This document shows, in pieces, positions 3,848 to 52,200 of a stretch of 64,000 nt of DNA. This DNA is from Orbicella franksi. Taxonomy: Eukaryota. The notes below the pieces were generated by a model, which had not been told where the DNA came from, did not search any database, and saw nothing but the letters and a program-made list of their open reading frames with translations. The stretch covers positions 3,844,001 through 3,908,000 of the forward strand of contig OZ116703.1 in assembly GCA_964199315.1 (NCBI GenBank), given 5' to 3'. A program made the position numbers and the translations under genes. Position 1 is the stretch's first letter. Each line of letters begins with the position of its first letter.

Positions 3848-6800
3848 TTAGTTAAGCTTTAATATTGCCGCACCACTCCCTGGCTGAGTAACAAACAGAC
3901 TCTCCGATACTCGTTGAAGTTTCTCAGGGTCAGCGGCATAGTACCCGTCATGCACTTTTTTCATGAAATCATCGATGACGTCAACAGGTACCATTGATAC
4001 TGTGCAACCGCCCCATCCCGCTCCTGTGAGCCTGGAACCAACTGCGCCAGCTTGCCTGAAAAATACAGTGATTCATGTTGCAAAGACTTGTTTCTAAGTG
4101 GCCAGAAAGGTCTTTTATTTTCATGAGAAAAAAGATATTTGATGATTTCACGCAATTATGGCTTCAAATTCTAATAAGGTAAGAAAAACAGTTATTACCG
4201 TCCCTTTTGATGTTTATTTTAGAGTATGTTAGGTGGTAAGGACTATTTGAATGAATACCTGCAGAGATTCACCAACTGGTCGAGTTCCTCACAACTGCAC
4301 TCGTACATCTTACTACAGCTGTCGTGGCTCTCGTTCATCAGGCCTCCCAGAACCTAATCACAAACAAGACAACAACAACAAAAGTTTTCACGGAAAATAA
4401 CCGAAAACAAAGTCATCACATCTGGCCAATCACAGTAAACGCCGCGATAACGAAATGCACCACTGAATCAGAGCTCACAGCAAAAGCACGCAAACGGCAC
4501 CAAGCGCGAGAAAACATGCGACTGTTGCCATCCGCGGGAAAACATTCGACTGGTGGCACCCGCGGGAAAACAGCCACAAAACAAAATGCAACAACAACCA
4601 CCACCTTTAAGAGGAGGCTTTTCTAATTGAAGACTTTTTCTTGGTTTTCGTATCGGAAATCTTTGAAAACAGGGAAACCACCTATTGATTAAAACAGCCC
4701 CAAAAGCACAATCAGTGGCGACTATTTTAGGATTCGTTCCAATTTTCAGTAGTACTGTCCTTACCTGAACAGCGTTAGCAGGTTTTTCCTCGCAGACGTT
4801 TTTAAACTTGAGCACTCGAGACGCTTCAGAGTAGACATGCTTGGCTCGGTCGTGAAGTTTAAAGCTATTTACACCCGCAGTTGAGGGACTCATGCACTGG
4901 TTGATCAACTCTTCCTCCTGTAAAACAATGTAAAAGCAATGACTTGAGTTGTAACCAAGAGGCCGGGCGCACCTAATTCTAGCGAGGTTACAGCAAATAT
5001 TTATCTGCTCGTATTTACAAAGCTTGTTACCAGACTGTTACCACTTCAAAGTTTAGCCAAGCATTTGTTGCGGATGAAAATTTTATTTCAGCGTCTTTGC
5101 GCAAAACAAAAAAATGTTTTCCTTCCGTAACAAATTTGCACGCTAATGAAATAATTTTGGGAAACACAACTGGTTCCTGGGGCCTGTTTCTCGAAAGTCC
5201 CGGAAACTTTTCGGGCCCGAAAAGTCATTTTTAGCTCATCTGTATCTAAAAATGGAGAAGCGTATACGCTTGAAACTTCTTGAATGAAGAGAACCACTGA
5301 TCGTGTTAAGAATATGTGAATATGTGAATAAAACAGCTCTGTAATCCAGATATTGCTATGGCTTTCCGGGTGCGAAAAATTTTCGGGACCTTCAGAAACG
5401 GGCCCCTGGTTTGCTGGGGCCTTTTAAGAAAGGCTAGTTATTACTTTAGAAATCACAAGACCGGGAGACTAGGGCACAAATTGCACCTGGTTTTGTTCTA
5501 TCAACATACCGAGAGTTCAAAAAATTTGCAAAGCTCTTCCTTTGTGTAGGGCTCTGAATGAAGACACGAGTCGACCATCTGTACCCTGTATCAAACACGA
5601 ACAAAAAAACATACGTTACATTCTTACTCGAATCAGTTCTATCACAATAATAAATATTCCACATTTGATTTGAAAACACCTGTTCATTTGAGATCCATTT
5701 GAATTAAAACGACGCATTGTTAACTACGCACAGCTTACATTTCATCCAAGCTCTTTTCGTCGCCTTGCTGTACCTCACTCAAACGTCGCACACTTTTCCA
5801 ATCCAGGCCGCTTTCTTTAGCCAACACCTATGGGTGAAAAGAAGCGGAGGTAAATTCATAACCTTGGTTCCATAACAGTTTCTTTAATAACAATCCTCGC
5901 CGGGGACAGAAGAGTGTTTGAGAATTTATTCTGGCGTAATATTTCCTCTTCGGTGGAGTTTTCTTACTTATTTTATTTTATGCTGAGACCTTCTACAAGG
6001 TCTCTATCGGCCCTCAGATTTCAGCCGTCCTTTACGGAGTCGCACCTCAGGAGTGCTCGACTTCAGGAAGACACCCGAAACTCAAGCTTGGTCACTTACA
6101 ACATCGAGCTTCTTTTCCGTCTTTAGTCAAAGTTAGACAAACATACCTTGGCCGCTAACCGACACTCTACAACTCTGGCGTTAAAATGCGTCCCAGCTGT
6201 TGCAGATTTCTTCATTTCCACCTACATATAAACAACCTTAGTATCTATAACGGTCTTTTGATTCAGATTTAAATTAATCGCGTACTTTAAGTTAGTCAGA
6301 ACTTATTTAAGTGTCAATGTATTTAGCCCATGTGGGCTAATTGGGGACATTGTATTAACTCTACCTAAAAATTTTCATTAATAGTATTATGGGATTCTCT
6401 TAAAAAATTAAAATTGAAATATTGGCTAACAATGGAAGGAAATAAAAGAGTATATGTTGTCCTAAGAAACGCCTTAATTATAATGTTATATTAATTAAAG
6501 TTTAACATTCTAAAATTCTATATTAATGTACATTTAAAATTCTAAATATTCGTCCTCTCTTCTTAATAGATGAGCGAGGCCTCTTATTTCGGGCGAAAAA
6601 ATTTACTGTCCGCACAGGTTGCAGCAATTGCTGTTGTTACTTAGATAAGCCGAAAGGTCCAATTTTCTTATTTTATTCCTAAACGTTGCTACATTTGGCA
6701 ATTCTCTCAAGCCTTTTGGAAGCTTTGACCATAAAAGAGGACCCATGTATCACAAAATCGCGCGCTTTCCATGCATTTAGCATCCCCAATAGGGAAGATA

Positions 6801-40486: not shown

Positions 40487-43400
40487 TCATTTTTCACACA
40501 CTGCTCCCTGGTCAAACCTGTAATATGCCATTTGGCAGATGCCATACAGATGGACAAAAGCCGCCATCACAACAAGCACATGGAATATTTGATGGCTCTG
40601 GAACTGATGGAAAAAAGAGAAACAGCCATATGTGAAAATTAGAAGTTACATAATTATTTTCAAAGTTGTGAGGGGTATGCTGACTTGATTGAAACAACCG
40701 TATTTGAGCTTGGCCAGTATCTTACTCTTGTGCTGGCCAAGGGAGGCGCAGTGGCCTCATGATTAGTGTGCTGGTCTCTGAATCGAGCTATGCGAGTTCA
40801 AGCACTGGTGGGGACATTGTGTTGTGTTCTTGGGCTAGACACTTAACTCTCACAGTGCCTCTCTCCACCCAGTTGTATAAATGGATACAGGGTTCAATTA
40901 AATGACGGGGGTAACCCTGCGATGGGCTAGCATCCCATCCAGGTGCAGTAGAAATACTCCTAGTTGTTTCATGCTACCAAAACCAGGATTAACTCCAGCC
41001 TGATGGGCCACTTGTAGAGAACTCTTATAGGACGTCACAAAGCAAATGAAGGAGACATACTCACCCAAATATCACACTTCCCGGGAAAGAACCTCTCGGG
41101 AATCCTGGTCGCATACATGATGGCGCCAAGAATGTACAAGAGACCCATGAGGGCCATCCATCCTACTGAGGCCTGACGATGAGCCAGGGTCACTCCATGT
41201 GCTACCATGAAGTGAATAGCAGGCACAATACCAGAACATCCAAATGTAAGGAAAAGACCTAACGAAAAACAAACAACAAACCTTAGTGACTCAGTTTACA
41301 CTTAGAGATTGCCCTGGCATTGCCAGACCTTATCATTAACACCACCTTTTACAACTTACAAGTAACACAGCTATAGTAAAAGTAAAACAATAGGTAAAAA
41401 AGTACGAAATAATGACTCAGTAGCTTTTGATAACATGGACATGCACTAGGGTTCTATCCATAGACTCAAAAGTTTGAACCATCTTATTTGTACATCACAA
41501 TATAGTACTGCTCAGTTAATTATTACCTTTATTTAAATAGTCATAATGAATACCATATAGAAGTGCTGCTCAGTAACCTTCATTTGAATGGTCAGATACT
41601 AGGGTTTAATTTAGCAAACTTAAAAGTTAGAGCCACCTTGTACAGCATAATAAACAATACCACATAAAACATATTGCTCAACTGGCTTTCATTTGAATGG
41701 CTCTACACCAGGGTCTCAATAATGCACACTAATATAATTCCTACTAAAAGCACTCACCTGCTCGCAGTACTCGGTACTTGGGTGTGTTGAACTTACTCCA
41801 CAACGAAACAATTATGCACAAGATGCCTAGAGTACAGATTATCGACATGTACACAATCTTTAGCACTCTTGAACAGTAGAATCCATAGTAAAGAGGAGGA
41901 ATGAATGAGCCCATGATCAACAGTGCTATGCCTGAGTAGTCAAGCCTGCAATAAGCAAAATTGCACAAAACTGTCAGTTTCTTTTTTACAATAACTGCAG
42001 AAATTCCTGTGTGCTTATTGGGTAATTTTCATTGTCAATACGCTGACAGACACATGAATTTAAAATTATGCAATGTTGCTATTCTTGTAAAACGCAAATT
42101 GACATTAGTTATTCATGCACCTGTCCTGTTATTGACAATGAATTTCGTCATAGCATTGTCAAAGTACTTTGCAGATCCACAGCTACTTTGACAATGTTAA
42201 GACAAAATTTTTGAAGAACTGACATCAATTTGTTAATTAGATCCAAATGTTGCTCTGACACACTGCATTTCAAGCCACATCTAACAATAGTTAAACCTTC
42301 CATGTACAGCACATGTTATACTGATGAAAGTACAAGTCTTCTACGCTGTAAATGTAATCCTCACTTTTAGGAAGCTTTGCGGTTACCAGTACCTAGAGGT
42401 TATTATTTCCAGGAGCAACTGAATTTGGTAGACCTTGGTATATGGTATGTGTGGCAGTAAGGTGGCCTAATGGTTAATCTGCTGGACTTTAGATTGAGCA
42501 GTCCAGGTTTGAACCCTAATTGGGTCACTGTTGAGTTACTGGGCAAGACACATTTTTTTGTCACAGTGCCTCTCTCCACCTAGGTATGTAAATGTGTGCC
42601 AGCAAATTTAATACTGGGAGGTAAACCTATGATGGACTAACATTCCCTCCGAGGGGGGAGTAAAAATACTCCTATTGTTTCATGCTGCAGAAACCACTGA
42701 GGATAAGCTCCAGCTGCATGGACCACTGCCCCGACACAGACTTTATATGTACATCGACTTTCTTTTACAAAACCTATTAGCTCACCTGCTAAATACCTTG
42801 GACACCGTGACAGAATGGCAGTAGACAGTGTGGAAGATCCACGAGAACCCTAAACACAAGATTGCACCAGCGAAGAATGCTCCGAACACAAGCTTTTCTT
42901 GCCAGTCTTTGGGAAAGGGATTGGCAGTGGTGATCGGCCGCAAGAACATGTAGATTGTGACGCAAATAAAGGCAAGGAAACCGATCAAATGAGTCCAGAT
43001 ATTGCCAGTTTCAGTGTGAATTTTAAAAATGCTTTTAAAGCAGGATTTAAATGATGGCATGGGGGGTCGGTGGTGGTGTGATAAAAAGTCATTATCGCGC
43101 AGCCATTCTGGAAGCTCAAAGTGTGAGAGGAGGTACCATCCTGAACGCGCTAATTCAATTGCCCTCTTGGAAATTCTCTCTGCTTTGTCAGCGGCATCAT
43201 GCATGCTTTCTTGCACATTGTCTTTTGCCGTTTTCAATATCACTTGAACCCTTTCCGCGGCATCAGACATGTTTTCTTTGGTCGACTTTATCATCACATG
43301 CATCCTCTCTGCAGCCTCATGCATATTGTCCTGCATTTTCTCAGCTGCGTCGTGCATGTTCCCCTTGATTTTAACTGCTCTATCTTGAACATTCCCCTTT

Positions 43401-46400
43401 ACAGTTTGGAACATCACATGCAGATTCTCTTCTCCTTTGACAATGAAGACCTAGCAAAACACAACAAGAAATTAACTCTCACTAAAAGAAAATAGAGTTC
43501 CTTTAACAATATTTATTTTTTACTAGAAAGCACAAGGAGCTAAAAGAAATGTTCTTAATAAGGATACTATACAGCTCCGATTGTAGAACAAACTAATGCA
43601 TCTGAATGCGTACAGTTGTACTATCATGTGTCAATGCAAACTAGATACTGTATACATTTCACTAGCAAATTCTATCTCAAGTGCTTCGCTCAAAACTACA
43701 GATACAATAAGAAAATTAAGAACTGCTGTGGGACTTTCTAGTGTCTTTGAATTAGAAACAAATTAAAGTAAAAGAGGACAAACCAGCTATGATTACTAGC
43801 TCCATTGGAGATTCCCAGTGATGCAACTCCTCTGAAAATTAAATTTTGTTACAAGATTCACTGATCATTTAATATGTGGGTGTTCTTTTTTTTTTTTTGG
43901 CTGCTTATAATTGATATAGTGTTGGAACTACAAGTGATGCTCAAGGGATCTGCAGGTAAGGAGTACAAAGGAACCACCAGAATAGTGTGTATAAAGATGC
44001 TACCAACTGATAATTTATTAATTGATTACAATTTGCATTCTAATTAGTTTCTGTGTAATTCAACAGGTACTCGTGAAGCTTAACACTTGATGATAATTTG
44101 CTATGGTACCACAGCTAGTTAGTAAATTGAACTATTTATTTGCCACTTTGTCCAAAGCATAACTACTGCAGCGGGAATGACAAGTTTTATCAAAAGCCAA
44201 ATTATACAGTTGACCTACATAGATATGTTCACGAGTTTCACATTCTCTGAACAGTATCTTCACGCATAAATAGTAAAGGTCCTCGTAAAAAATTCAAAAG
44301 GTTTATGTTTAGGCCTGAGGATTTTTAAATAGTAAAACGGTTTTATTAATACAATATAGCTGCCCGTGAAGCAATCTTTGTGGCGGCTTCTAGGTTTCAG
44401 GAGATTCTTGATAAAGATTCCAAGGTCATCACTAGGTGATCCCCTGAAAGGTCTTTCTTTGCAAGCAATATAATTCATGCACAGATGTAGTGCAATGAAC
44501 ACAGTGCCAGCAGGTTTACTCATAAAAAAGTAGTACCTCTATGAACTCATAAATAAGTCTCCTATGAACTATCCCAAATAACAATCCTGATTACTGCCAA
44601 GTCAAAATAGTTTTCTACACTACACTTTCTACAGTGCATTGTTTTCGCAATGTGGAAGTGCAGTGGCCTCATGATTATAGTGTTCAACTCCCGATCAAGC
44701 GGTGTGAGTTTGAGCCCTGGCTACGGGACATTGCCTAGTGTTCTTGGGCAAGACACTTAACTTTCACAGTGCCTCTTCCCCCCAGGTGTACAAATGGGTA
44801 CCAGCAAATTTAATGCTGGGGGTAGCCCTGCGATGGACTATATTCCTAGTCCCTTCATGCTACAGAAACGAGGAGAAGCTCCAGCCTGATAGACCACTTG
44901 GCTCATATGCAGACTATCTTTACCCTAGTTTTAGAAAAACTTGCAGTGTGAGAATTTGTTTCCTGAGAAATTTATAATTATTGCAGATGAGAAGAAAAGA
45001 TTCACTGATCAATAGTTCTTCTTTTTTAGGCTTGTATACATTTCTTAACATAATATACAAACAATGCAAAACAGCAATTTCAAGTTCCCTTGGCAATCTC
45101 TAAGTTGCCTTCTGTAGTTTTGCCTAATTAGTTTCGTAAAGCGCGCTGGAGCACAATCATTTGAGTTTGATTTGCATAACAATAATTTCTTTTTTCACAT
45201 GAAAGATTTAGCAACAGTTTTTTTTTAAAAAGAGGGTGAGTGATGAAAGACACTGTTTTTAAAACACTGTCTTTACGCAGGTGGCATAAAAGTAAAAATT
45301 TCAGATAACAACATAGCAAGTCATCAACTTCAGTTGACCACATTCTGTGTAAAAGCTGGATTGTGTACATGTTGTCATGGCATGAAGCAATTCTGATAAC
45401 TTTTATGACAACTTTTTTGAGTAAGCTTATGTTTTGGAAGATCTCCTCTTTTCTTATGAAATTGTTGATTATGAATGCAGAAGCAATATTGAACCTTGTA
45501 TAGTTGTAAATATACATGCACCCCTGTAATTCTCAGATGGTGAGCTCCGAATATAAAATATAGAAAAGATGAGGCATTGTTGAACCTCTTAGGCACCAAT
45601 TACAGCAAGATGTTTCGTAGTCTAAAAGACAAAGAGTTGGTCGCACCGCAAGATAAAGACCAGAAATAAGGTAGGGGAGCATCTTGAACAGCCGCAAGTA
45701 ATTTGCATTGTTGCAAAGCGTGGGGACAACTTTGGTGGTTGTTTATACTTTCTGAAGTCCACAGTTATAAATATATATCCACTGTTTGTGGTTTTTATTA
45801 CAGAACGTCCAGCTTGAGTGACGAATACAATATTACAGGCAGTCTAGGCGGTCAGGTCCTCGACGCCTACTTTCCGTATACTATAGCAGGTGAATTGATG
45901 AATATTTCATAAAAAAAGAAGCTCACTGAACTGCCTCGTAGTTGTTTAAGAAAGGCCATAGTCCACTTTGAATCTGAATTTAATTTGGTAGTTTTCGCCC
46001 GAAAAGTAAAAGTTGAAATTAAACATCCAGTGAAATAAACAAGAAATTTCGTGAAACTGACAATCTGTTCATCTGCGTTCTTATCTTTTCCTTTGTTTGT
46101 GCTTTCACTTTTCATCAGTCACAAATTTCGTTTTTACAATCGCGATCGACACATAAAATAGGTCTTTTATTTAGAAAATATCTAAAGCTAAGCACATGAA
46201 GCTTACCTTGGCCTGTTCAAGACCGAGCAGAGCACACGTCACTGTCCCGTCCTCGTTCAGGTCCTCGTCTTCTTCTTCGTTAGAGTCTTCATCGGAACCC
46301 TTGCCGATCGAACCATCGTTAATTTCTTCGCTGCTTCCCTCCGATGTTTGGCTTTTGCAACTCTCATATTCGGTGGTACTTGAACTTATACTTTCAGAGT

Positions 46401-46623
46401 CGTTGCTTTCCACTGTCACGTCGGCTGATTCTAATGTCGTTTCTCCTTCCTCAGTTTGTAATTCTAATGTCCTTTCTTCTTCCCCTTTGTTCTGTACGAC
46501 ATTGCCGGTACGTTCGCCGATACATTCAGAGCTTTCAACAATTGTGCCACTGCTTTCACAAAGTTCCGTCTCACTCGCAACAATTTCACTCATGTTGGTT
46601 CTTCTTCTCCGTAGCTCTGCCAT
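40487..46623 (-). CDS. ADIPOR: Adiponectin receptor (PAQR family, ADIPOR1/2 co-orthologue), 5 coding exons, 526 aa
   Basis: Exons (minus): 46207-46623, 42786-43450, 41758-41945, 41065-41258, 40487-40603. GT-AG, in phase, 1581 nt. Motifs LPEWLRDNDFL..HRPPMPSFKSCFKSIFKIHTETGNIWTH, FSWIFHTVYCHS, RLDYSGIALLIMGSF, RIPERFFPGKCDIWFQSHQIFHVLVV. The Zn-site His/Asp/His/His residues are intact. Confidence 0.96.
40741..41014 (+). mobile_element. tRNA-derived SINE in ADIPOR intron 4 (antisense to gene)
   Basis: GGGAGGCGCAGTGGCCTCATGATTAGTG (A-box-like), GAGTTCAAGC (B-box-like), central CTTGGGCTAGACACTTAACTCTCACAGTGCC segment. Confidence 0.85.
42141..42209. repeat. Hairpin core of a foldback repeat
   Basis: AATTTCGTCATAGCATTGTCAAAGTA / TACTTTGACAATGTTAAGACAAAATT inverted arms. 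Confidence 0.55.
42453..42745 (+). mobile_element. tRNA-derived SINE in ADIPOR intron 2 (antisense to gene)
   Basis: GGTGGCCTAATGGTTAATCTGC head, GGTTTGAACCC B-box-like motif, CACAGTGCCTCTCTCCACC core. Confidence 0.8.
44654..44924 (+). mobile_element. tRNA-derived SINE in ADIPOR intron 1 (antisense to gene)
   Basis: CAGTGGCCTCATGATTATAGTG...GTGTTCTTGGGCAAGACACTTAACTTTCACAGTGCC...CCACTTGGCTCATATGCAGACT. Confidence 0.85.
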
Positions 46624-48086
46624 GTATTGTAATTCGTAAAAGATCAAGGACAATATTTATATACGTTGCTGATCACGTTACTCACGCGGTTTACGTAACA
46701 AAATTATAAATTCCCGCGCAATCGAAAGAGTGCACTACTCGACGACAAAAGACCGTGATTTCTTCACAGGCTGTAGCCGCTCTCTGACTAGCAAGCGCTT
46801 CTAAGTAGACTCCCTCAGAACTCTATCTCAACCACCGTGGCTACACTCTTTCCGTGAGAAACTGAAATACAATGAAACTTTGAAATATATTTCTCAACAA
46901 CGAGGGTCGGGTCAATGGTTGGTCATAGTGGTCTGATCAATATTGACCAATCAAATAAAATTTTAGAAAAAAATCACAATCACCTAATTTGGAGTCCCCT
47001 CCCATTATCCAATCAGATTGGCCGATAGAGTGCATACGAAAAAAGATATTTTGGGGGGCAAAGTTCGCTTTTTGGGGGGCAAAAATAAATGAATCACATG
47101 ATTTCAATCCAATTTCAACTTCGATGGAAGAATGTTTGGCAGTTTCATGTATTTTAAGCTTATTAACATTTGTTGTCTGCAATGTTTTTCAAGGGCATTT
47201 TTTTTGTGAAATAAATAAATGGATCAGACTTAGTTGAGTTAATGATACTTACTATGTCTATTGCTAGTCTTCTGTTCAGTTCCTCAATCAAACTTAACTT
47301 GGTCAGTCATGATCAATCACTTGTTTTTATAATAGTAATCAATGAATGTACAATTCTTGAAACCTCAGAAAAAATATATTAAAATACAACTGTATATCTG
47401 AGTGCAGAGGGAGCATACAAGTACTTTTTTTGTTGGTGTTCTTAATCTCACTTTCCCAGGATCTTAGACACTAAGACTTCCTTTCATCACTCATCACTGG
47501 CTACTAATGTAGTATAGCTGATTCTGCCTTCAGGCTCATCAACTATCACTTCATACAAATCTCACAAGATCATAATTGTTACTGTTCAGATTATTTTAAG
47601 AAGTCAAATTTCTCAGGACCGAATTTGATAGTAAGATTTCTGCCTACAACCCATCCTGGGGACATTGCAAGGCCATAGCCAGTAAGAGGGAAACTGAGTC
47701 ACTTGCTTCGGTCATTTTTTTCATTTTTGTGTTGTTTTTTTTTTCCATTGATTTCTTTTTTTTGGCAGGGGGGGGGGGGGGGAATAAAACACTGCTAAAT
47801 ACCCAGAGAGAGAATTTAACCATACCTCAGTCATATTTTTTTCTGGTTACAGCCCTGACTTGCGTGAGACTTGATGGTTTGATTCAGCTGGTGCCGCAAA
47901 CATATTGCATGTGGCATTTGGAAGAAAAACATCTTCAACTAAACTGGCCCTAATACTGCGTACAATGACCTCAAAACAAATGTGGAATTCTTGAGCCTGC
48001 AGGAGGTCAAATTTATTTACTAACATTTAAGCCAAAAAAGCCAAAATAAATTTATCTCAGTCTAAAAGAAAATCGTTTTAGAATAT

Positions 48087-48803
48087 TCAGTCAGCATTAA
48101 TTATGCAAAATCCTCTAGGCAAGTGAGAAGAACTATCTTCTGGTGTCATAGCATCGAAGAGCTTCTCTGTCTTCACCCAACCAATTGGATTGTTTGGCCA
48201 AACATCCAACAGCAAGAACATGTCCTCTCCAAAATGATACCCCCCTAATGGACTAAAATGTCCCAAATTAACCCATTGATAAAAAGCTGCGAAGTGATAA
48301 TTCACCACCACGTGAGATCCTGCCTTTTCCAGGTTTTCTAAGACAGTAGATCGAAATTCGTCAACTGATGAAATCACTGGACAAGTTCTTGGCGTCGATT
48401 CATGTGATTGGAACACGTGATGAAAACGTCCATACAAACCTACGCTGTTGATGAGTTTCGCGAAGGTTTCGAGCGTAATTCCCTCTTTACCGACGTCTTC
48501 TTTCCTCAGAACTGATCTAGCTTCACCTAACTGGAGAATATCATCTTCTCGTATGGTTGTCTTCGTTTCTTTTAGTTGAACAAGTTCGTCAATTTTCTCC
48601 GTCACGCGAAAGTTGTTCAAGGATAGTCGCTTGTCAAGAATTTCATTCAGACAAATAGCAGCGCTGCAGAGTCCGCAGTACTTAGAATTTACTTGCTTAC
48701 AGAAATAAGGAAGTAAATGCCCAAATCGACTTTCTTCTAGCAGTTTTTGTCCTTCAGCAGTTTCCAGAGAAACAAGAAACGGGGAAGATTTCGTGACGGC
48801 CAT
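48087..48803 (-). CDS. PCS: Phytochelatin synthase (glutathione gamma-glutamylcysteinyltransferase), catalytic domain only, uninterrupted CDS, 238 aa from the first in-frame ATG
   Basis: Papain-like triad in PCS context: KQVNSKYCGLCSAAICLN (Cys), LGHFSPLGGYH (His), LLLDVW (Asp). Also LETAEGQKLL, GITLETF, VVVNY, GWVKTEKLFDAM and D..SHLPRGF. First in-frame ATG at 48803; the ORF-track start at 48830 is not an ATG. Confidence 0.92.
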   Translation of the reverse strand: MAVTKSSPFLVSLETAEGQKLLEESRFGHLLPYFCKQVNSKYCGLCSAAICLNEILDKRLSLNNFRVTEKIDELVQLKETKTTIREDDILQLGEARSVLRKEDVGKEGITLETFAKLINSVGLYGRFHHVFQSHESTPRTCPVISSVDEFRSTVLENLEKAGSHVVVNYHFAAFYQWVNLGHFSPLGGYHFGEDMFLLLDVWPNNPIGWVKTEKLFDAMTPEDSSSHLPRGFCIINAD

Positions 48804-49238
48804 CGCACCACCGAACACGCGCCGCAACACGAAACATCTTGAGAGGGGAGAGGGGACAGAGGAGAGGGGAGAGGAGTGAAATTACCATGTTATTGATCTT
48901 TCTTTTCTTATTTAATTTGTTTCTTTTTTCATTTAGAAAAAAAATTTCTTAGAAAATAAACACAAATAAATAAAATATTATAATTTACCCCCTAAAGATA
49001 AAGAAACCTGGAGTATACATAATTTCCCACCCCCACCCTACTCAGTCTTATGTCATTTGACAACCCAGTCATGCCAGCGGAAATTTACTAGTGACAAAAA
49101 CTTTTGAATGCATTCTCGGCCCGCGAGGGACTCATTTTGTTTCACACATTTTTGGAATTCTTTGTGTCTGTTGGGCGATATAATGCCTCGAAGCCTTCGT
49201 CAAGAAGGTAGAGGAAATAATGTTTCACCCTGTTCACT
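48804..49238. promoter_or_regulatory. Probable shared divergent promoter region between PCS and the LRRC74-like gene
   Basis: ATGs at 48803 (minus) and 49239 (plus) are 435 bp apart. Contains a purine tract at 48841-48876. Confidence 0.5.
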
Positions 49239-52200
49239 ATGAAATCGTCGAAAGATGTAAAATCGCCCGGGTTAAATGCACATGGAGACAAGCTCATCTC
49301 GTCGACGCAAAGAACGGTGAGATTGTTGGTTCTTTGTATCGGGATTTGTTTATATATAAATACAAAAAAAAAGGCTTTGAAAATGTCCTGAGTGAGAAGC
49401 TAAAGCATTCTCGAAGAGTGTCCTTTAACTGTGTTGCATTCATTGCAATAATTTTTAATTGGTCCTTCATCAAAGCTAGCGCGGCAAGCGCGCAGTGCTC
49501 ATAAATAAGTTAATTTCACACTCATTAGCTTTAGAAGATGATTCTTTGTTTAGCGACGAACACAGGTTTTTTGTTGTTTTACTTGGCTTCTTTCTTTGAA
49601 CATTTCCATTTTTATGGTAACAGGAGAGCTAGCTCTCAGACTATCAGGAATCCAGAAGTTTTTCAAGCGCTAGTTTAGAAGCCAACGCTAATTAACAGAA
49701 CAAATTTTAATAAAGCAGATTAAAGAGTTATGATAGCGTCATTATTGGTATGCAAAACTAATGAAGCATCACCAGATGAAGCTAACAAAAGCAGTAAACT
49801 TTTCTATCTCAGTGAGATTCTTGTATTACAAATGGCTTCCTCTATTGATCTCTCTGTTTTTTTTGCTGTGTTAGAATAGACCCCTTGGAAACTTTCAGGT
49901 TTAGAGTTCTCATCATCACAGAATCAGCTTGCCCAAATTGGCTTTCCCTCACACACACACACACACAAAAATAAACTACAAAAAATAAACTGTAGTGAAA
50001 ACCGTACATTTATTACTGTGGAGTCAACTTTCTATTTTGGATTTACTTTTCTGGCACTCATGTTCCCAAGACGACTCCTGACAAGGTCTGAGAATTGTGG
50101 CTTGCTTTTTGGGTGGATAATTTTTCCGTTAGGATATGGTATTGGCCAGCAAAATGATTTATCAACAAAAGACTTCAACAAAGCAATGCCAACACAAAAC
50201 AGCCATTAACTGAACAGGAAGGAATACAGAGATCTTTCCAGTTCTAATGCAGATCAGCAGGTACTGTCATGAGATGTGAACTCTAAAACACACACTTCTT
50301 TGCCTGCCTCCAGAATGCACCTCCTCTATCCTCACAAGGTCATGGGTCACTTATTTATAGTTATATTTTTTCTTTTTCTTCTAGGTTGGAAAGGGCACTA
50401 TTTCGCCCCGGAAACAAGCGGCAGAGAGGTCTTATCGTAGAGCAATAACACCATTACCTTCTAAACCAGTCTCCGGCATTGGTCATGCTTCGAGACCCCA
50501 GACTTCTTTGGGTCTTTATAATGAAAAGGATGGTATCTTTGACATTGCATCAAATATTTCCAGACCAAACTCTGCATTTGGAAATAACACTTCTCCAAAT
50601 GTCTATAAAATTTCCAGGTACCGTGGTCATTACATTGATGCATTATTTCCATATTTACATAAGAATATTAGTCACGTTGATCTTTTTGTGAAGTGATAAG
50701 ACTCTTTGTTTCCGTAACATATTAGATACTTGATTTTATACTCTGTAGTCCTAAATAATGTTAAGGCCCAGTTCAGACGTCGTGCTTCTGCTGTGCCAAA
50801 CATAATTGCAATTTGGTTCCACTGTAGCACGGCAAAGAAACAACTCTGATTTAGATGTCATGCCAGAGTCGAACCAAATTCAGCATTTAGCGATGCCTCA
50901 TAGCAATTCTCCTCCTAACTCCCCGTGGGAATGCAATCTCACCAAAATACATTAATATAATTTATGAATTTTGTTTAGTATGGCAAAAGCACGACGTCTG
51001 AATCACAGCCGTGCCAGAGTCGTGTAGCACGACAGAGCTTGTCGAACTTAATTGCTTGCCGAACTTAATGCAAAAGTTTGATTCAGATGCTGTGCTTCTG
51101 CCGTGCTTTTGTCGAACTTAAATCCTGAATTTAGTTTGGCACAGCAAAAGCACGACGTCTGAACTGGGCCTAAGTGAGTAATATTTCATTTGAACAAGTG
51201 GCTGCATAAAGTCACCCAAGCCAGTTTTCACCCCATTTTACTTTCAATTGATCATACATATCTAGGTTCTCCCAAAGGAGACAGGTGTTCACCTGAACCC
51301 TTAAAAAATTTTTTTCGATCTCATTGTCTGCTACATTGTTCTTTTAATAGAATAGCCCTTTAATTCTTCCTTGAAATAATTTATAAATGATCATTTTCCC
51401 CTATACCCCCAAACCCCCAGGAGGCCACCATTGTCGGCTGCCTTTTTTTGCATCACACAGCTACTCATAGCGGTTGTTGTGGTGTTCTGATTTTAATACA
51501 TCATTAATGCATTAGAGCAAAGACTCCATCAAAGGGTAAAAGCACTACCAAGTCCAACAAGAGCTTGCAGAAATCAAAGAAAGCACCTAAAGCTAGAGCT
51601 GTTTGGGAGGACAACACGCCACAGAATGTGCAGTCAACTGATGGTGACACTTTAAGCACAAATGCAACAGATTTGAATGAGCGAAATGACCCTACAAGTA
51701 AGCTTTATTTATGTTATAAAAATCCTGAAGTACAGGTTGTTACATATTTATTCAGTATTGGTTTTACAAAATATAGAGTTTTGGGTTTCATGCGATAAAA
51801 TTGAAAGAGGACTGTGTCAGAAATTTGTACTTGCTTGGTGTTTAAAATGTCTACCCTGGCATAGCCAGTAGTCAGTGGTAAGGATGAATGAGACGGAAGG
51901 TTGAGAATCCAAGAGAATAGGGGAATGTTTAGGAATTGACGTGAAGCAGGATTCCAAAGGGGGCAGGCCAGGAACTGTGAAATATTATAACCACTGGAAA
52001 AATACATCACTATAACTTCAAGAATTAGTAGTCAAGAGTGTCATGCATAGATTGCAAAGTCAAATGCAGGCTTTCATATCCAGGCTCCCACCAATTCCAT
52101 ACAGGTTCAGGAGTCCATTGATGCTCCTGCCAGGTTTTATTCCAGAGTCCTGCGCACTAAGTTTCTTGCCCGTTCTCGTCTTGCTACAAGAATTCAAAAT

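Follow-up and report, generated by a model that had tools for sequence, protein, structure and literature searches.

The 64,000-nucleotide stretch of the Orbicella franksi genome analysed here, termed the window (contig OZ116703.1, positions 3,844,001 to 3,908,000 of the forward strand), carries on its minus strand a short gene of the phytochelatin synthase (PCS) family. The open reading frame (ORF) occupies 48087..48830, and translation from its first ATG, at 48803, gives a single-exon coding sequence (CDS) of 238 codons and a TGA stop (48087..48803). Residues 10-232 of the product match PF05023 (Phytochelatin) with 109.3 bits (cut-off 24.9) and cover positions 10-210 of its 210-position profile; no NCBIfam profile matches the protein. 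No second Pfam domain was found, and the ORF ends 6 residues past the catalytic domain, so that the product has neither a Phytochelatin_C domain nor a Cys-rich tail. The initial annotation had described a catalytic-domain-only PCS-like protein of ∼240 amino acids (aa) with an intact Cys/His/Asp triad and no C-terminal Cys-rich extension, and this description is borne out, including the triad, which aligns to that of the Nostoc enzyme discussed below. As the protein begins at the domain without a leader sequence, it is expected to be cytosolic.

The gene is real, transcribed and uninterrupted. A single residue (G105/D105) separates the window protein from Orbicella faveolata XP_020624368.1, which RefSeq names glutathione gamma-glutamylcysteinyltransferase 3-like. 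The CDS is identical at 716 of 717 bases to assembly GCA_002042975.1, on which the NCBI gene model spans exactly 717 nt for 238 aa and so has no coding intron. The JGI contig L020 (1068 nt) is colinear with window positions 48829-47774: it covers a 5' leader (48804..48829), runs through the stop codon and continues over ∼310 nt of 3' untranslated region (UTR; 47774..48086), which holds an AATAAA at 48012-48017, and ends at a genomic A-run. Together, the gene model and this contig uphold the single-exon structure proposed initially. In polyA RNA-seq runs and contigs, 0.92-0.95 of the CDS words are present, and 14 RNA runs contain 0.51-0.63 of the words sampled from the surrounding 1.8 kb (47600-49400), a fraction that fits an unspliced mRNA of ∼1.05 kb, the length of L020. 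The Logan contigs encoding the Orbicella protein are colinear with the genomic flanks and are uninformative on splicing. Comparison with four orthologues gives dN/dS values of 0.17-0.29; the gene is under purifying selection. In GCA_002042975.1 it adjoins a gene with leucine-rich repeats and EF-hands (LRR/EF-hand) and an HlyIII (AdipoR) gene, in agreement with the LRRC74 and ADIPOR flanks named for the window.

The closest solved structure by sequence (E 4e-21) is the Nostoc sp. PCC 7120 protein Alr0975, or NsPCS (PDB 2BTW, 2BU3, 6TH5, 6THO, 6TJL), a ‘primitive’ half PCS whose Cys, His and Asp align with those of the window protein. An AlphaFold2 model from a 23-sequence alignment (pLDDT 91.5, pTM 0.91) has the same fold, and its nine top PDB matches are all Alr0975 (E about 1e-18, TM 0.73-0.85). 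Like the coral protein, NsPCS consists of the catalytic domain only, is of similar size, has an Asn four residues before the catalytic Cys (N39 in the coral) and is without the four N-domain cysteines of plant PCS; the criteria of domain-only architecture, Asn at this position and absence of the CC and CxxxC cysteines are those used for half-PCS proteins (PMC11314372). The two proteins nevertheless share only ∼30% identity. The match starts at residue 40 of the 254-residue NsPCS chain, whereas the coral protein lacks such an N-terminal extension, and it has extra helical inserts at about residues 55-85 and 134-146 and a CxxC motif at the nucleophile.

Codon-exact translation of the window gives Q37, N39, C43-G-L-C46, F171, H182, D200-V-W-P-N-N-P, D223 and R230. 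The oxyanion-hole residue Gln37 (48693..48695) is the equivalent of NsPCS Gln64 and AtPCS1 Gln50 (PMC3855540). The catalytic nucleophile Cys43 lies within the CxxC (48666..48677), followed by the catalytic His182 (48258..48260) and by the catalytic Asp200, which opens the D-V-W-P-N-N-P segment (48186..48206); Asp223 to Arg230 form the segment D-S-S-S-H-L-P-R (48114..48137). Q37, C43, H182 and D200 align to NsPCS and are conserved in at least 94 of the 95 members of the clade, here called the short clade, to which the protein belongs. Across all PCS groups, Gln37, Cys43, His182, Asp200, Asp223 and Arg230 vary little or not at all, and the Tyr immediately before the catalytic Cys (Tyr42; Tyr55 in AtPCS1) is also retained. 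Asp223 and Arg230 probably correspond to contacts for the donor gamma-Glu in the NsPCS acyl-enzyme structure. As judged from the alignment, then, the acylation machinery is intact.

The second-substrate site is another matter. In AtPCS1 the residues Gln50, Arg152, Lys185 and Tyr186 (NsPCS Gln64, Arg173, Lys206 and Tyr207) shape the cavity for the second substrate, and mutagenesis shows R152 and K185 to be essential: R152K or K185R nearly abolishes synthesis of phytochelatin (PC; PMC3855540). NsPCS keeps Arg173, Lys206 and Tyr207, whereas the coral protein has Phe171 (48291..48293) at the Arg152 position and, after the catalytic Asp, the sequence W-P-(gap)-N-N, with N204 and N205 at the Lys185 and Tyr186 positions and a one-residue deletion. 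The changes are not confined to corals. The Arg152 equivalent is Arg in 75 of 79 bacterial and 20 of 20 canonical sequences and in none of the 95 short-clade members (Met 49, Leu 31, Phe 4); the Lys185 equivalent is Lys in 72/79, 20/20 and 17/95, and the Tyr186 equivalent Tyr in 64/79, 20/20 and 3/95, respectively. Where other enzymes have D-[VT]-A-R-[FY]-K-Y, the short clade has D[VT]-W in 83 of 95 members, with Pro as the next residue in 73 of 95, a one-residue deletion and loss of the Lys185 and Tyr186 equivalents. The W position is Ala in 70 of 79 bacterial and 19 of 20 canonical sequences, and the P position is Arg in 65 of 79 and 20 of 20. Among 87 further profile matches, mostly bacterial or archaeal, 81 keep the Arg and one carries the signature; this unnamed protein scores right after the coral proteins and is probably a short-clade member itself. 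The DVWPNNP that had been noticed after the catalytic Asp is therefore genuine and lies in the second-substrate loop, and it is a mark of the whole clade and not a coral oddity. Read across the alignment, the Arg152, Lys185 and Tyr186 equivalents have been replaced throughout the clade by Met/Leu/Phe, by Trp-Pro and by a one-residue deletion, a systematic rebuilding that gives a more hydrophobic acceptor loop.

The ancestry of the gene can be followed in some depth. An exhaustive HMMER search of 1.84 billion representatives returned 1478 matches, and among the species genomes of 185,579 bacteria and archaea 163 relatives were found, the best of them (32-33% identity) from Candidatus Parabeggiatoa. 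What a further, alignment-based profile search contributed was for the most part bacterial or archaeal, without any additional named cnidarian. In a FastTree phylogeny of 260 domains the window protein falls within the 95-tip short clade (SH 98, stem 0.25), which holds none of the 79 bacterial (GTDB) loci and no canonical PCS. IQ-TREE (LG+C20 by PMSF, 72 rows) recovers the short clade at 100/99, places the coral group as sister to the sponge Oscarella lobularis (97/87) and sets canonical eukaryotic PCS and group 2 cyanobacteria apart in a clade of their own (100/100). All short-clade members that carry an organism or database name are eukaryotic: Oscarella, the choanoflagellate Didymoeca costata, Amphiura, Antedon, Strongylocentrotus purpuratus, EukProt entries and stony corals. 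The median length of the short-clade proteins is 244 aa. The named holozoan relatives outside the corals, S. purpuratus XP_003730583.1 (‘glutathione gamma-glutamylcysteinyltransferase 2’), Amphiura filiformis XP_072044957.1, Antedon mediterranea XP_071964499.1, O. lobularis XP_065827017.1 and D. costata EP00039_P016973, are proteins of 210-220 aa that, like the coral protein, have lost the Arg152 equivalent and mostly have D[VT]W; they differ from it in sequence (30-37% identity) and in having no CxxC at the catalytic Cys, and the echinoderm genes belong to the clade's other half. Of these genes, those of sea urchin and brittle star consist of a single exon, and the Oscarella gene has one 99-nt GT..AG intron, in phase 2, after codon 95. 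This Oscarella relative (4001-4756 of its extracted locus L102, OX382151.1) lies between Cep192-like and pyrophosphatase genes, and a second Oscarella copy of 218 aa (XP_065826216.1) lies on the same 4.1-Mb contig.

An intronless, single-domain gene of about the size of the bacterial proteins invites the idea, raised in the initial annotation, of a recent horizontal acquisition of a bacterial NsPCS-like gene by corals. The closest solved structure is indeed cyanobacterial, and the nearest neighbours of the window protein in a protein language model are bacterial PCS clusters, although such proximity is not evidence of origin and is contradicted by the tree. Recent transfer is nonetheless very improbable: the best bacterial identity is 32-33%, none of the 79 bacterial loci falls in the clade and its signature is absent from bacteria, an approximately unbiased (AU) test rejects the grouping of the corals with Parabeggiatoa, the best bacterial match (delta lnL 57.8, p 0.003), the coral orthologues are syntenic, the CDS has a host-like GC content (42% vs 38.8% for the window) and the sponge relative has a spliceosomal intron. 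Unlike the NsPCS-like bacterial half-enzymes, the coral protein groups with none of the bacteria sampled. The case shows that a gene may look bacterial and have no introns within an intron-rich animal locus without having been imported recently.

The initial annotation had offered a retrocopy as the other possible source of an intronless CDS in an intron-rich locus, and here the remaining PCS genes of the same genome are informative. Seven loci with a PF05023 match turned up when the 497-Mb assembly was searched in six frames. Besides the window gene (108 bits), they comprise a canonical-type gene on C12 (262 bits) and a tandem cluster on C3 of three to four copies (159-213 bits) plus one broken copy. 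At every one of these loci the catalytic domain lies in an uninterrupted frame, and no intron-containing PCS parent is found among the seven; there is therefore no intron-containing parent for a retrocopy. The canonical PCS on C12 (C12:23947038-23947703; 1312-2256 on the minus strand of the extracted locus L001) is one uninterrupted ORF of ∼301 aa that matches a 301-aa protein end to end; it has a ∼70-aa tail with several cysteines, not the long plant-type C-terminal domain, and its orthologues in Pocillopora, Acropora, Nematostella and Exaiptasia have 274-330 aa. Canonical eukaryotic PCS (AtPCS1, C. elegans PCS-1 and the coral C12 and C3 proteins) share the Pfam family and the triad with the window protein and are likewise intronless in this genome. 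They have a Glu four residues before the Cys, the CC and CxxxC cysteines, the sequence D-[VT]-A-R-[FY]-K-Y-P-P and the Arg152 equivalent, none of which is present in the coral short protein, and usually a Cys-rich C-terminal region (∼70 aa in coral C12), which it is also without. That the window gene is a retrocopy or recent duplicate of a coral canonical PCS is extremely improbable: the AU test rejects union of the coral group with cnidarian canonical PCS (delta lnL 125.6, p 1e-5), the C12 and C3 paralogues that would have to be the source are themselves uninterrupted ORFs, and the pocket residues differ systematically.

The C3 paralogues (C3:24399147-24422476; L002, L003, L004, L006 and L007) are canonical-type proteins of ∼240-250 aa with the catalytic domain only. 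In L003 the catalytic Cys is replaced by Ser (T-Y-S-G-L-N), L004 is without the N-terminal part, including the catalytic Cys, and a further copy is split by a TAA. This cluster may correspond to the enlarged ‘phytochelatin’ family that PMC11639872 reports from merulinid and Robusta corals.

Orthologues of the window gene occur in many coral data sets as proteins of 234-256 aa without a C-terminal domain, at 53-99% identity to the window protein; named examples come from Orbicella, Oculina patagonica (78%) and Pocillopora verrucosa (61%). The single-ORF gene stands ∼4.5-5 kb upstream of an HlyIII gene on the same strand both in Pocillopora and at the locus of a 56% identical protein (P0024). 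The window has that order and orientation, with AdipoR exons at 46171-46653 and 42782-43417 downstream of the PCS-like gene; the latter is a large AdipoR exon. Because the AdipoR-linked position is shared, the gene must have been at this locus before the sampled stony-coral lineages split. At the deepest cnidarian-like relative (P0028/P0087, locus L105), a search for the same synteny gave no Pfam or BLASTP match in the downstream ORFs. The 46171..46653 ORF, which coincides with the start of the NCBI AdipoR (HlyIII) model, is acidic and Ser/Glu-rich, lies ∼1.46 kb downstream of the PCS-like stop on the same strand and has no Pfam match; of this ORF only the last ∼22 residues are shared with the correspondingly placed Pocillopora ORF (73% identity).

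By tree, synteny and composition, the window gene is thus placed in an old animal/protist branch of the family; it was inherited vertically in stony corals rather than imported recently from bacteria or retrocopied from a canonical PCS. Its position, in a clade with sponge, choanoflagellate and echinoderm relatives and with single-ORF coral orthologues, is essentially the outcome that the initial annotation had itself named as arguing against recent horizontal transfer or retroposition. Events at the base of the short clade, either an ancient transfer or an ancient retroposition, may still have taken place, as the tree is unrooted. One version would make the gene an ancient retrogene that arose within its subfamily: an early cnidarian, or a still earlier lineage, would have retrocopied a short-type ancestor with an intron, and this copy would have replaced its parent. 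The single intron of the Oscarella relative, set against the intronless coral, sea-urchin and brittle-star genes, is compatible with such a history, but the same distribution would follow just as readily if the sponge line had gained its intron or if introns had simply been lost, and in a gene of 0.7 kb the absence of introns is unremarkable. Similarly, an interrupted A-rich tract (about 47700-47775) ends the 3' UTR, but the A-run is short and broken, and a search of the flanks (with 48841-48876 masked) found no target-site duplication, the longest direct repeat being an 11-mer T-run; age would have erased the marks of retroposition. The AdipoR synteny shows only that any such event predates the divergence of stony corals. 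On balance an ancient retrogene seems quite unlikely.

What the enzyme does is best considered from its two substrate sites. We infer, with a probability of roughly 0.7, that the window encodes a short PCS-like enzyme with a changed acceptor pocket, the product of a conserved, single-exon, transcribed gene of an old separate clade, which would act as a peptidase rather than as a PC polymerase. Its likely function, judging by the residues kept and lost, is that of a gamma-Glu-Cys-releasing glutathione or glutathione-conjugate peptidase. In the proposed mechanism, the enzyme would attack the Cys-Gly bond of glutathione (GSH) or of a glutathione S-conjugate to form a gamma-Glu-Cys thioester; as the second-substrate residues are lost, hydrolysis would be favoured over transfer, and water, not a second glutathione, would resolve the thioester, making the protein a glycine-releasing peptidase in the turnover of glutathione or its conjugates. 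There are precedents for each activity in the family: NsPCS is reported to convert GSH mainly to gamma-Glu-Cys (Harada 2004, as cited in PMC11314372), and glutathione-conjugate turnover is reported for plant PCS (Beck 2003, as cited in PMC11314372). The algal ‘half PCS-like’ proteins of group 1 are, like the coral protein, eukaryotic proteins of the NsPCS-like ‘N’ type without a C-terminal domain, and have been put forward, in a study of algae and cyanobacteria only, as candidates for GSH metabolism rather than PC synthesis (PMC11314372).

Several points weigh against this interpretation. The case for a peptidase-only enzyme is drawn from residue loss, and NsPCS keeps the Arg, the Lys and the Tyr and is yet a poor PC synthase, so that these residues by themselves do not predict activity. 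In AtPCS1, moreover, R152 may also stabilise His162, Asp180 and Tyr186, and its mutants might disturb the first site (PMC3855540); if R152 braces the triad in this way, the changes in the clade could compensate one another structurally and preserve an acceptor site, though one of another shape. As to the clade itself, most of its members are unnamed metagenomic or transcriptomic proteins, its description as eukaryote-only depends on the named members and on the absence of the signature from the 79 GTDB loci and from 86 of the 87 further profile matches, and the family tree is unrooted, so that the short clade may be of ancient bacterial origin.

An acceptor site of another shape leads to the alternative that the protein is a working PC synthase with a differently built Trp/Pro acceptor pocket and contributes to metal detoxification. 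It has the full catalytic set, including the Tyr42 equivalent of AtPCS1 Tyr55, on a fold that matches PCS, it bears the RefSeq transferase name, and C35, C46 and C50 near its active site could bind metal. Set against this, the Arg152, Lys185 and Tyr186 equivalents are all lost, in a family where even the conservative R152K and K185R replacements abolish AtPCS1 activity; the protein has neither the C-terminal metal-sensing domain nor the four conserved N-domain cysteines (CC, CxxxC) of canonical PCS; and the same genome already has canonical PCS genes. PC synthesis by the window protein is therefore considered unlikely, and the peptidase remains the preferred assignment.

The catalytic cysteine of the coral protein has a feature that is restricted to part of the short clade. 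A second Cys at +3 from the nucleophile is found in 23 of the 95 members, including all the coral orthologues, and in none of the 79 bacterial, 20 canonical and 66 other sequences. In three members (P0099, P0111 and P0248; EukProt Seg7933.2 / Seg459.4) the motif is C-G-P-C, exactly that of thioredoxin, with the PCS nucleophile as its first Cys. In the window protein, further cysteines near the active site are C35, C46 and C50. Since the nucleophile of the papain fold caps a helix, as it does in thioredoxin, a disulfide or metal switch at this site is geometrically plausible, and one may speculate that the CxxC could make the activity of the cnidarian enzyme sensitive to redox state or metals. 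A broader and tentative proposal, which is doubtful as a whole, would be that holozoans have a second PCS-family enzyme whose rebuilt pocket makes it a dedicated cytosolic gamma-Glu-Cys-releasing peptidase for glutathione or hydrophobic S-conjugates, with the C-G-x-C of the cnidarian form allowing it to be switched off by oxidation or soft metals.

The ‘PCS genes’ of animals are commonly treated as a single family and assigned to metal detoxification. The tree implies that stony corals and, by the same placement, sponges, echinoderms and a choanoflagellate have a second, deeply separate PCS lineage. PCS genes have been listed in Cnidaria and Echinodermata (PMC3838358), a survey of coral stress genes found the family enriched in Robusta and merulinid corals (PMC11639872), and the RefSeq annotation of the coral gene and of its sea-urchin relative as gamma-glutamylcysteinyltransferase-like is already known; in the literature searched, no description was found of the holozoan-rich short clade, its pocket signature or the CxxC, nor any characterised member. 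If the proposed function holds, the PCS counts of coral stress surveys lump a glutathione or conjugate peptidase together with true PC synthases, and part of animal glutathione catabolism is still unassigned. Holozoans would then have a PCS-type route of conjugate and GSH breakdown, so far discussed mainly for plants, and a CxxC switch, if real, would couple glutathione breakdown to the redox or metal state.

Some smaller observations concern the clade and the gene borders. Six short-clade members are much longer than the rest (P0196, 1231 aa; P0213, 659; P0161, 550; P0163, 406; P0122, 362; P0129, 344): the W-P-type PCS-like domain also exists fused to other regions. Just upstream of the ORF in the window lies a purine-rich (GA) stretch (48841-48876). 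At the other border, window positions 47700-47790 contain 15 consecutive G (C on the gene strand) followed by interrupted A-runs, at the exact end of contig L020; this tract is either a polyadenylation region, an artefact of contig assembly or priming, or simple low-complexity DNA.

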